A DNA stretch of 64,000 bases. Source: Setoptus koraiensis. Its lineage: Eukaryota; Animalia; Arthropoda. Shown here piece after piece: positions 60,240 to 63,060 of the stretch (position 1 is its first letter; the number at the start of each line of letters is the position of its first letter). Location: assembly GCA_048013815.1 (NCBI GenBank), contig CM106585.1, positions 14,818,001 to 14,882,000 on the forward strand, written 5' to 3'. The translations under genes were made by a program, and so were the position numbers. Under the pieces are notes generated by a model that saw only the letters and a list, made by a program, of their open reading frames with translations, was not told the origin of the DNA and did not search any database.

Positions 60240-63060
60240 TCAAGAAAACGGCCGATTGGTGGATCCTAATTGATGGCGGCCACCGCTCATCTTGCTAGGT
60301 GGTGCTCTGTCTAGACTCAAGTCGCAAGCAACGGCGCTTGATATAGGCGAACAAGTTATTGTCTGTTGTTGTTGCAGTTGTAGTTGCTGTTGTTGCTGCT
60401 GCATAATGTTCATCATGGTAGCAACATGACTGTTACCACCAACTGCGAATAGTTGATTGATTGCATAATTTACGACTCCATTGTGATCTGGCGATAAGTC
60501 ATTACTATTGTCTAGGTTGATGTTGTCGCTGATGTTGTTGGCGCCAAGCAGACAATCAGAACCGTTTTGGTTAGTTGTAGCCATAGGATTGAGATAATAT
60601 TGATTCATTGCCATAGAAGTTAGTGCACCCAGCGACAGTTGCACCGCCATGGAGTGGTCAACCGATGACCATGGACGCCAGACAGGTGAGCCCATCACCT
60701 TGTCATCGACACCTGTTGTAGTTTGCTGTTGTTGTCGTTGTTGGTTCCTCGTGTCCTGCTGTTGCTGTTCAGTGGTCGGGTCATTAGTTTCATTGGGGCC
60801 CTCGCGGCGCTCTCTGGCGCATCTAGCCATGTTACAGACTACACATTGGCATGAAGGTGAGCCATATAGGCATGTAAACAATATAGGTTTGTTGTTTAGT
60901 TTTTCAGATAGACAGAAGGAAGAGAGAAAAGGAGGGAGGGAGAGAGTTCAAACAGCATGCGTTACGTAATATGTTAGAAATTTTTGTGTTTGTTTAGTGT
61001 GTTAATGTTGGCAAAGTTGGTGGTTTGGGTAAAAGAAAAATAGGCACGTTCGTGCCATTTCAATCAATCACAGATTAACCATTAGCCAACAAGGATATTC
61101 TGTTATTGTTAGCGCTGTTGCCATTACTCTTGTCGCTGCTATTACAACCATGATCATTATGGCAATTGTTGTGTGTAAATCATAATTATAATTGTATTAG
61201 AGTTATAGAGAGTTGTTAGTTGTGTGACTTGTGTGCCAGTTATTGGCCATATTGCCCAACAAACAAACTAGCCATGATTTGATTTGATTGTTCTCAGAGC
61301 CAAAGCTGTTGAGCGTTACAAGCAACAACACAAAATAGTCTCCTTGTTATATAACAACGACTCATTTAGCATTTAACAGACAAGTATAACTAATTTAAGC
61401 ATGCACTGTTTTATGCCCAATTTCTTTCTCTCTTTGCTAGATTCAACCAATAACATACAACAACAGTAAATGTCGATGCTTCAATAATGGTACTAATAAT
61501 CATAGAAACAACAACCAGCGATAACAAATTTTCTAAACAAGAAATACATTAAAAGAAAAAAGAAATATTATTATAGTTGCTCTACTGTGTTTCGGCGCTG
61601 CGTCTGATTGCTCACCGAAAAGACGGCAAAGGGTTAGCAAAAACATTGCCCAAAGAGTTTAGCTGCCATAGTAGCACCATCTTGATTCATCCTCCTTGTT
61701 CTCAAGTTAAATAAAATAAACACTTACAAGCTAACACAAACTAGCACTTATGCGATAATAAAATAAAACAAAATAAATAAGTGAATTCGCTGCTGAATGG
61801 CCTCACTAGTTTGTCTGGTATCTTTTGGCTTTTCGCATCACAAAATCAGCGGTGATTGAATCGAGTTTCGAGGATTGACTTCATTACTTCTAATAAACTC
61901 ACCTTTTTCAACCTCTTCTCTCGTGATAGCCTCTCTGGCGGTTTTGCGCTGTTCCTCATTTAGATTTCTGTCCTCCTTCATTGCTCTGCGCATTTTGATC
62001 TGAAGACGATTTACTTCATTGCGTATAAAATGTACCTCGCAATCGAAACAATTGTCGCGTTGAAAGTGGCGCTCCTGTCCGAATCCGCAACTTCTCACAT
62101 GACCTTGTCATCGTCGTTTATAGTTTATATTCATCATGGTACAGAACGTAATTGATTATTTAGATATATCCGCAATTATGATATGTACACTACCGCTGAC
62201 ACAATTTAGAGTTTGTTAGCTTGTATCTTGGCTCATTAGCTCTGAATCTGTCGCTGAAAACCTCACCTTTTCTTAATATTTTGACGCCATGATTCTGACA
62301 GTATCCACAATTGGGGTCCTTTTTGGTGCCTTTGAGTTTTGTCTCCTTACCGCTAATCACTTGCAGGATGTCGCTTGTCGATAAGAGCAAATATGTTGTT
62401 GTGGTTTTAGATTAAAATTTAGTTGGACTTGATTAGTGGATTTGTTGATTGTTGTCGGTGATTTGCGCTCAATTTATAAAAAATTACCTTCTAGCATCCA
62501 ACAGGCGACATCTTAGGCACATGCACTTTTTGAATGGGCAATCTCTGGCGTGACCTGTAAATTTTCAATATATTTACGTTGACAAACCGGTAAGGTAAAT
62601 GAATTAGGCTCTCGGTGATAGATTCTCGATCTCGCGTATCGGTTTTGAGATGCTCGAGATCGAAATAGCTTCTGAGGCTCGACAAAAAGAGGACGAAAAG
62701 CGATTCCGCTATGCCGTTGTCAAGCAAGCAAGAGCTCGATCGCACGAATTTGAACAACACACTCAAATACGTTACAGCAAGAATTATTACAAGCTTAAAG
62801 TGCTCCAATTAAGAGTGAATCAAAATTACGGTAACTACTAACAGGAAGAGGTGAGACCTAAATTTGCGGAATCTAGTTTGTTAGATCAAGAAATTCGTCA
62901 ACTTGAGGAGCACGAGCGCCACGATTGGTTGGATGTTATAGCCTATAAATAGCTTACCTTTTTTGAGCACCTCAAAGTCATGATTTTGACATTTGCCACA
63001 CTTGTTTCCATTGTCGCAATCGAATTCTCTGCTGCTACTGCTCATGTTGCTAGGCCACAT
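60240..63060 (-). CDS. DM-domain (doublesex/mab-3-related) transcription factor with two tandem DM domains; exons 63060-62958, 62554-62488, 62373-62267, 62103-61903, 60838-60240; ~358 aa
   Basis: Spliced: ...CGKCQNHDFEVLKKG|HARDCPFKKCMCLRCRLLDAR|SDIL...PNCGYCQNHGVKILRKG|HVRSCGFGQERHFQRDNCFDCEVHFIRNEVNRLQIKMRRA...EK|VCNM...Q-rich tail. All four introns are GT-AG and the phases sum to 1077 nt. The DM exons are well supported; the start codon, exon-3 acceptor and last-exon link are less certain. Confidence 0.85.

Follow-up and report, generated by a model that had tools for sequence, protein, structure and literature searches.

We analyzed a 64,000 nt stretch of the Setoptus koraiensis genome (GenBank assembly GCA_048013815.1, contig CM106585.1, positions 14,818,001 to 14,882,000), hereafter the window, which carries on its minus strand a five-exon gene (63060-60240) encoding two DM (doublesex/mab-3) zinc modules in tandem, DM1 and DM2. 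The C-terminal half of DM2 lacks the cysteine equivalent to Cys68, one of the eight canonical DM zinc ligands, and is six residues longer than its canonical counterpart. We consider it likely that this segment belongs to an orphan Dmrt-type transcription factor in which a residue of the inserted helix would serve zinc site II and the module would read a DM-type half-site.

Sequence and fold of the second DM module

A pattern scan of the six reading frames detected four DM-type half-modules on the minus strand: an N-terminal half at 63000-62956, a canonical C-terminal half at 62552-62508, a second N-terminal half at 62309-62265, and an unusual C-terminal half in exon 4 (61903..62103). Exon 4 reads H-VRS-C-GFGQERHFQRDN-C-FD-C and then enters the recognition helix EVHFIRNEVNRLQIKMRR (61985..62038); translated without interruption, 62101-61985 gives H-VRS-C-GFGQERHFQRDN-C-FD-C-EVHFI-RNEVNRLQIKMRR, followed by AMKED.... 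A first-pass annotation of this stretch, made from the letters alone, had reported the same string with a missing Cys and six extra residues, and all of these are present in the minus-strand translation. The coordinates it gave, 61990-62103, cover the segment except for the last codon and a half.

Exon 3 (62267..62373) contributes C-GY-C-QN-H-GVKILRKG, with its ligand codons at 62307-62309 (Cys), 62298-62300 (Cys) and 62289-62291 (His), which brings DM2 to seven of the eight canonical DM ligands. The CCHC ligands of site I are intact, canonically spaced (C-GY-C-QN-H-x8-H-VRS-C) and invariant in orthologs; ligands 4 and 5 (H-VRS-C) are encoded at 62099-62101 (His) and 62087-62089 (Cys), and the orthologs use CAC/CAT and TGC/TGT codons for them. 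The departure lies in site II. Where the canonical HCCC spacing is C-x4-C-x-C-x2-C, DM2 has C-x12-C-x2-C: the Cys68 equivalent is absent, and 12 residues instead of six separate ligand 5 from ligand 7. The 12-residue segment GFGQERHFQRDN (62051..62086), which replaces the canonical x4-C-x, contains an invariant His (62066-62068) and an Asp aligned to Cys68 (62054-62056). Ligands 7 and 8 follow as C-FD-C (62039..62050; Cys 62048-62050 and Cys 62039-62041), likewise invariant with TGT/TGC codons, and the recognition helix carries an additional invariant His (62030-62032) three residues after the last Cys.

Profile comparisons show that DM2 still belongs to the DM domain family, and structure comparisons give moderate support to its having the DM fold. 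The window was scanned exon by exon, and the scores of a contiguous domain come from naturally intron-less orthologs. Pfam DM matched orthologous DM2 with 30.4 bits (P0003) and 27.4 bits (L002:940-1206) at a gathering cut-off of 27, and aligned model positions 1-45 of 47 across 51 residues, which corresponds to a six-residue insertion. Among the exons of the window, exon 2 matched DM positions 20-40 (E 1.8e-5) and exon 3 matched DM positions 1-18 (E 0.0037, 17.6 bits). In sequence searches, orthologous DM2 matched Dsx (1lpv, E 7.8e-5) and DMRT1 (4yj0, E 1.1e-3).

An AlphaFold2 (AF2) model, a check that the first-pass annotation had proposed, was based on clade members aligned with canonical DM domains and reached a mean predicted local distance difference test (pLDDT) score of 80.2. 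The insert ERHFKLD was predicted as a short helix (residues 33-39) followed by the long recognition helix (42-68), and the insert helix appeared in both AF2 runs. When the model was compared by VIA-align with 48,161 PDB representatives, the best match was the DM domain of DMRT1 bound to DNA (4yj0; Z 5.4, root-mean-square deviation 2.7 A), in which 62 of the 62 target residues were aligned to model residues 3-70, and Dsx 1lpv ranked second. DM2 thus shares with the canonical DM domain (PF00751; human DMRT1 4yj0, Drosophila Dsx 1lpv) the intertwined layout of zinc module plus recognition helix and the CCHC site I, but differs from it in the absence of Cys68, in the six residues added between ligands 5 and 7, in CQNH instead of CRNH, in seven of the 13 core helix residues (canonical RQRVMAAQVALRR), and in a conserved 27-residue extension after the helix.

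Conservation and integrity of the locus

A word search with exon 4 returned 18 open reading frame (ORF) fragments with 82-91% identity in Logan, JGI and ENA assemblies, and a second word search using the most divergent ortholog as the query returned the same set. Eleven orthologous loci were fetched, each of which holds the same four exons in the same order; residue and codon invariance was counted over nine loci, and about 14 related sequence variants overall carry the string of this module, far beyond what chance would give. In pairwise comparisons over exons 2-4, for which the exons were analyzed separately and the counts summed, synonymous sites were saturated (proportion of synonymous differences, pS, 0.52-1.0), and the proportion of nonsynonymous differences (pN) was 0.02-0.11. 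Despite this divergence, all nine loci have the same HVRSCGFGQERHF, the same C-FD-C and the same helix EVH(Y/F)IRNEVNRLQIKMRRAMKED. Nearly every invariant residue is encoded by two to five codons, the loop His by both CAC and CAT. The variable positions in the C-terminal half of the zinc module are the residue after the fifth ligand (G/H/S), one F/Y change thereafter, and the four residues [KQR][LRS][DEH][NED] before C-FD-C.

Purifying selection on the invariant residues is therefore strong, and a pseudogene was rejected on this ground. The first-pass annotation had described the module as maintained rather than decayed; in agreement, neither the loop His nor any other retained ligand changes, the variation in their codons being synonymous, and the possibility it had raised that orthologs might not conserve the His does not hold in any of the nine loci. 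These patterns indicate that selection maintains DM2 as a functional version of a known domain and that the module is not decaying.

We also searched 1.84 billion representative proteins by HMMER with the contiguous orthologous segment as the query, which yielded 35 proteins at E <= 0.001. These include 16 clade fragments, 80-99% identical to the query and all of them short ORF calls with no annotated full-length protein, and one spurious 787-residue repeat protein (P0027, 33% identity). After the clade fragments, the matches drop directly to canonical DM proteins with 32-44% identity. No intermediate or outgroup with the insertion is found among the 35 matches, nor any relative between the clade (at least 80%) and canonical DM (32-44%). 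An ESM Atlas feature search returned only chance-level bacterial clusters (score 0.79), and a literature search of limited scope turned up no report of extra residues inserted into the DM zinc module.

We give next to no weight to the idea that DM2 is a decaying duplicate, or that misassembly or an unrecognized micro-intron accounts for its odd spacing; this explanation is already refuted by the contig, splice-site, ortholog and selection results. Three sequencing runs carry the locus, of which X2 and X3 are evidently duplicate filings of a single data set, and in the contigs of the two independent data sets 61917-62684 shows 0 differences. Within the loop-coding stretch 62089-62048, no GT lies upstream of any AG, so that no GT..AG intron can be accommodated. 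Moreover, orthologs without introns read through the exon junctions. Intron 1 (62957-62555) is absent in P0022, which reads KKG-HARDC; intron 2 (62487-62374) is absent in L002, L008, P0021 and P0022, the first three of which read ..LLDAR-S-DILQ..; and intron 3 (62266-62104) is absent in L001/P0003, L002/P0006 and P0019, which read ..ILRKG-HVRSCGFGQERHF.... All three junctions of the DM region are thereby confirmed, and the odd spacing is encoded by the gene. A hidden micro-intron that restores canonical spacing, which the first-pass annotation had named among the dangers to its interpretation, was rejected, because a GT..AG pair is impossible in the loop and the orthologs are contiguous there. 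It is true that exon 4 alone goes unrecognized by Pfam and that no RNA run is among those carrying the locus, but the identity of the independent contigs, the very low pN/pS and the invariance of the loop speak against decay or artefact.

Two further observations concern the introns. Each intron of the DM region is gone in some related species, which suggests that precise intron loss is ongoing in this clade. Intron 4 shows three differences a short way downstream of exon 4: at 61832, 61851 and 61874 the three runs have G, A and G at full depth and the window T, G and A. They fall within 43 bases, near contig ends and outside the coding sequence, and may stem from a difference between strains or from a problem in the local assembly.

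Zinc site II and the recognition helix

The residue that takes the place of Cys68 was examined by HMMER against DMRT1 and by MAFFT against 18 canonical DM domain segments. Both put the invariant His inside the six-residue insertion and align the Cys68 position to the residue two before C-FD-C, differing only in where the gap opens. This residue is Asp in the window; among 14 sequences it is Asp in nine, Glu in four and His in one. The first-pass annotation had taken the sixth ligand position to be His, which these alignments contradict. Its wider proposal of a novel coordination variant survives in part: the site is non-canonical and maintained, but instead of a Cys-to-His change at the sixth ligand, Cys68 is lost and Asp, Glu or His stands there.

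From the sequence, the candidates for the fourth ligand of site II are the loop His, the Asp/Glu/His at the Cys68 position, and the helix His. As the other seven ligands are strictly invariant, invariance favors the loop His. In the AF2 model, the loop His and the Asp occupy positions i and i+4 of one short helix and would therefore lie on the same helical face, a placement consistent with a His ligand backed by a carboxylate or with the reverse arrangement. The CQNH His and both Cys residues of C-FD-C are also invariant, which argues that site II of DM2 is still used and has not been abandoned. We infer that site II would still bind zinc and that its fourth ligand would come from the inserted helix (ERHF-x2-D), most likely the invariant His, while the Asp/Glu/His four residues on would either assist it from the second shell or itself be the ligand. 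Carboxylate-His-zinc triads pair a His ligand with Asp/Glu in this manner, and the terminal ligand of LIM domains tolerates C/H/D; both belong to unrelated folds and serve as analogies only. Our tentative proposal for the whole is that site II is completed by the His of the inserted helix, backed by Asp/Glu at the old Cys68 position, to give an N2S2 site of new topology in a tandem two-DM factor whose DM1 is perhaps varied by alternative first exons.

Several observations weigh against this overall interpretation of the gene and its second module. The Pfam scores of the orthologs barely exceed the cut-off of 27, and exon 4 of the window alone gave no Pfam match. The Foldseek comparison with the PDB was weak (E 0.12 to 1lpv). 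When AF2 was run with clade-only sequences, the same helices were predicted but the pLDDT of the zinc module fell to 40-57, so that the confident fold leans on the canonical DM sequences in the alignment. At the ligand position itself, the aligned residue is the non-invariant Asp/Glu/His and not the loop His. A change of Cys68 to His in fly Dsx is reported as a loss of function (Zhang 2006, as cited in the orthopteran Dsx literature). Finally, the three runs carrying the locus yielded genomic, intron-collinear contigs and none from RNA, and our picture of splicing and expression in the window species is drawn from the orthologs.

Site II might instead have been lost, with one zinc at site I and the GFGQERHF helix forming a small hydrophobic/polar core in which the His is kept for packing or for contact with DNA or protein. 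One canonical Cys is indeed missing with no Cys in its place, two Phe residues of the insert, a predicted helix, are invariant, and the Cys68-to-His change is reported to inactivate fly Dsx. We regard such a loss as unlikely, because the invariance of the three remaining ligands (the CQNH His and the C-FD-C Cys pair) across saturated synonymous divergence would be hard to explain, and metal-capable residues (His, Asp/Glu/His and His) are conserved nearby. The fourth ligand might otherwise be the Asp/Glu/His homologous to Cys68 (Asp 62054-62056 in the window), like the variable C/H/D last ligand of LIM domains, leaving the invariant His with another role. This position varies whereas all seven other ligands are strictly invariant, and its neighbor also varies among polar residues (Asn/Glu/Asp), as for a surface dipeptide; we therefore doubt this assignment, even though both alignments place the residue at Cys68, the x-C-x2-C spacing after it is canonical, the position is occupied by metal-capable residues only in the 14 sequences, and the His variant of L009 (RLHEC) reproduces the HHCC pattern of orthopteran Dsx.

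For the recognition helix, HMMER and MAFFT align R111, V119 and R123 of DMRT1 to Arg, Ile and Arg of RNEVNRLQIKMRR, and these are invariant in the clade. According to a preprint that reviews the DMRT1 crystal structure, helix positions 8, 16 and 20 are the three base-contacting residues, consisting of two conserved Arg and a Thr/Val/Met (bioRxiv 10.1101/2024.09.25.614005); DM2 has Arg, Ile and Arg there. The altered helix described by the first-pass annotation is real, in that N replaces Q, E replaces R and N replaces M, among other changes, but these lie outside the three base-contact positions. Its suggestion of a possibly changed DNA specificity is weakened: as the base-contact positions are kept, a changed core specificity is not indicated, and effects on phosphate contacts or protein-protein packing are possible. 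DM2 would probably still read a DM-type half-site, and DM1 and DM2 would pair up within the one molecule, as in MAB-3. It seems quite improbable that DM2 no longer binds DNA and serves as a protein-interaction or regulatory module, with DNA contact provided by DM1 or by partners. The seven core helix residues that deviate from RQRVMAAQVALRR and the strongly conserved helical extension of 27 residues would fit such a role, but the kind of residue is retained at all three base-contact positions, with no variation, and the helix of DM1 is truncated without the distal Arg, which would make DM2 the better DNA reader of the two.

The tandem gene and its relatives

The four introns of the gene are all GT..AG with consistent phases, and the coding length is 1077 nt (358 codons plus stop). 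Exon 1 (62958..63060), which is conserved in all orthologous loci, contains the start codon and the N-terminal half of DM1 (..NKCGKCQNHDFEVLKKG) and ends in a phase-1 GT donor. Exon 2 (62488..62554) encodes the C-terminal half of DM1 with the canonical H-x3-C-x4-C-x-C-x2-C (HARDCPFKKCMCLRCRLLDAR), and exon 3 encodes the inter-module linker (SDILQVISGKETKLKGTKKDP) ahead of the N-terminal half of DM2. DM1 is a canonical zinc module, but its helix is short and runs into the linker, with the first Arg alone retained and the distal Arg lost. The two modules lie in one reading frame: a single ORF of L002 comprises the C-terminal half of DM1, the linker and DM2, and a single ORF of P0022 comprises DM1, the linker and the N-terminal half of DM2. 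A phase-1 intron interrupts each module at an identical codon (K-G|H), and both have CQNH instead of the usual CRNH. This shared intron position and sequence suggest that the two DM modules arose by internal duplication.

The 28 residues from the last Cys of DM1 to the first Cys of DM2 (RLLDARSDILQVISGKETKLKGTKKDPN), made up of RLLDAR from exon 2, SDILQVISGKETKLKGTKKDP and N, are invariant in the nine fetched loci, whereas two of them are substituted in P0026. Beyond the DM2 helix, a run of 27 residues (AMKEDR..EVEKG; 61904-61984) is nearly invariant. Judged by this conservation, both the inter-module stretch and the post-helix extension appear more constrained than a passive linker or tail would need.

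Exon 5 (60240..60838; stop codon 60240-60242) encodes the Q-rich C-terminal part, in which the motifs V-CNMARCARERRE and VWRPWS are common to the window and the orthologs. No DMA or Dsx-dimer domain was detected by Pfam in this C-terminal exon. Lacking the domains of the Dsx and Dmrt93B/99B subfamilies, the gene is best called an orphan Dmrt. The tails of the orthologs L006, L007 and L011 end in QQLF(N/D)TIF(R/T)L(F/I)FAQ(I/F)AQ, the version in L003 being more divergent, and exon 5 of the window retains just ..NQLFA.. before a different Q-rich tail. The C-terminus of the protein may have been remodelled in the window species; alternatively, the gene model may lack one more intron.

In orthologous loci (L003 2486-2527, L006 98-139, L008 2791-2832, L009 2992-3033 and L010 817-858), the exon for the N-terminal half of DM1 occurs a second time (..GNKCGKCQNHEVEVSKKG, then gt, with the same phase-1 donor), 2.5-4.8 kb upstream of exon 1; the window equivalent would fall beyond 64000. 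No other conserved coding block is found between this copy and exon 1 of the orthologous loci. The copy appears to be a first exon that serves as a mutually exclusive alternative and would exchange half of the DM1 zinc module. A separate paralogous gene was rejected, as the lone N-half exon is all that is conserved there.

The loss of Cys68 has a partial precedent. In orthopteran Dsx, Cys68 is replaced by His (HHCC-type), and the protein still binds ACAyTGT in SELEX (bioRxiv 10.1101/2024.09.25.614005), so that an N2S2 site II is compatible with function. Where the first-pass annotation had called these residues nearly invariant and the variant novel, novelty would stand for the insertion, for which the limited literature search gave no precedent, but not for a Cys68-to-His change. 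DM2 resembles orthopteran Dsx in a natural and conserved loss of Cys68 with an N-donor alternative, and L009 has His at exactly the Cys68 position. In the orthopteran case, however, a single residue is substituted, the spacing stays canonical and the protein has one DM domain, whereas here Asp/Glu/His is combined with a six-residue insertion bearing an invariant His in the second of two modules. One of the HMMER matches, P0041, has the same HHCC pattern as orthopteran Dsx (KYRYHNC).

Two-DM Dmrt genes have been reported in C. elegans and some ants and as the spider orphan Pt-Dmrt_like2 (PMC6604209). The gene described here resembles C. elegans MAB-3, ant Dmrt and Pt-Dmrt_like2 in carrying two DM modules on one polypeptide with a short linker after the first, but for these known proteins, in contrast to DM2, no deviation from the Cys/His pattern has been reported. 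The first DM module of MAB-3 also has a shortened helix. The likeness to MAB-3 is one of tandem arrangement. Beyond the clade, the closest proteins share just 32-44% identity. The two-DM proteins recovered by HMMER were canonical except for the first module of P0029, which is without Cys70, and that of P0036, which is N-terminally truncated. In P0029, an unrelated two-DM protein, the first module reads ..GHKRFCQFRQCDSPKC.. with Ser at the Cys70 position, a further naturally occurring deviation from the HCCC site II.

Among the sex-regulatory DNA-binding domains of animals, the DM domain is the one most widely shared, and all eight of its zinc ligands are regarded as essentially invariant; Cys68 substitutions made in the laboratory reportedly inactivate fly Dsx. 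DM2 is a naturally selected module without Cys68 and with a six-residue insertion, unchanged across lineages with saturated synonymous sites. Its practical value is modest, being that of a structural and evolutionary curiosity in a family that is well known and for which Orthoptera offer a partial precedent. The gene adds a chelicerate example of the MAB-3-like tandem arrangement, and DM2 is a ready-made test of how far site-II geometry can shift with function kept. If site II is completed by the inserted helix as we propose, the nearly invariant DM metal site would be one that can be rebuilt by an insertion without loss of function, and DM2 would represent a third natural DM zinc architecture.

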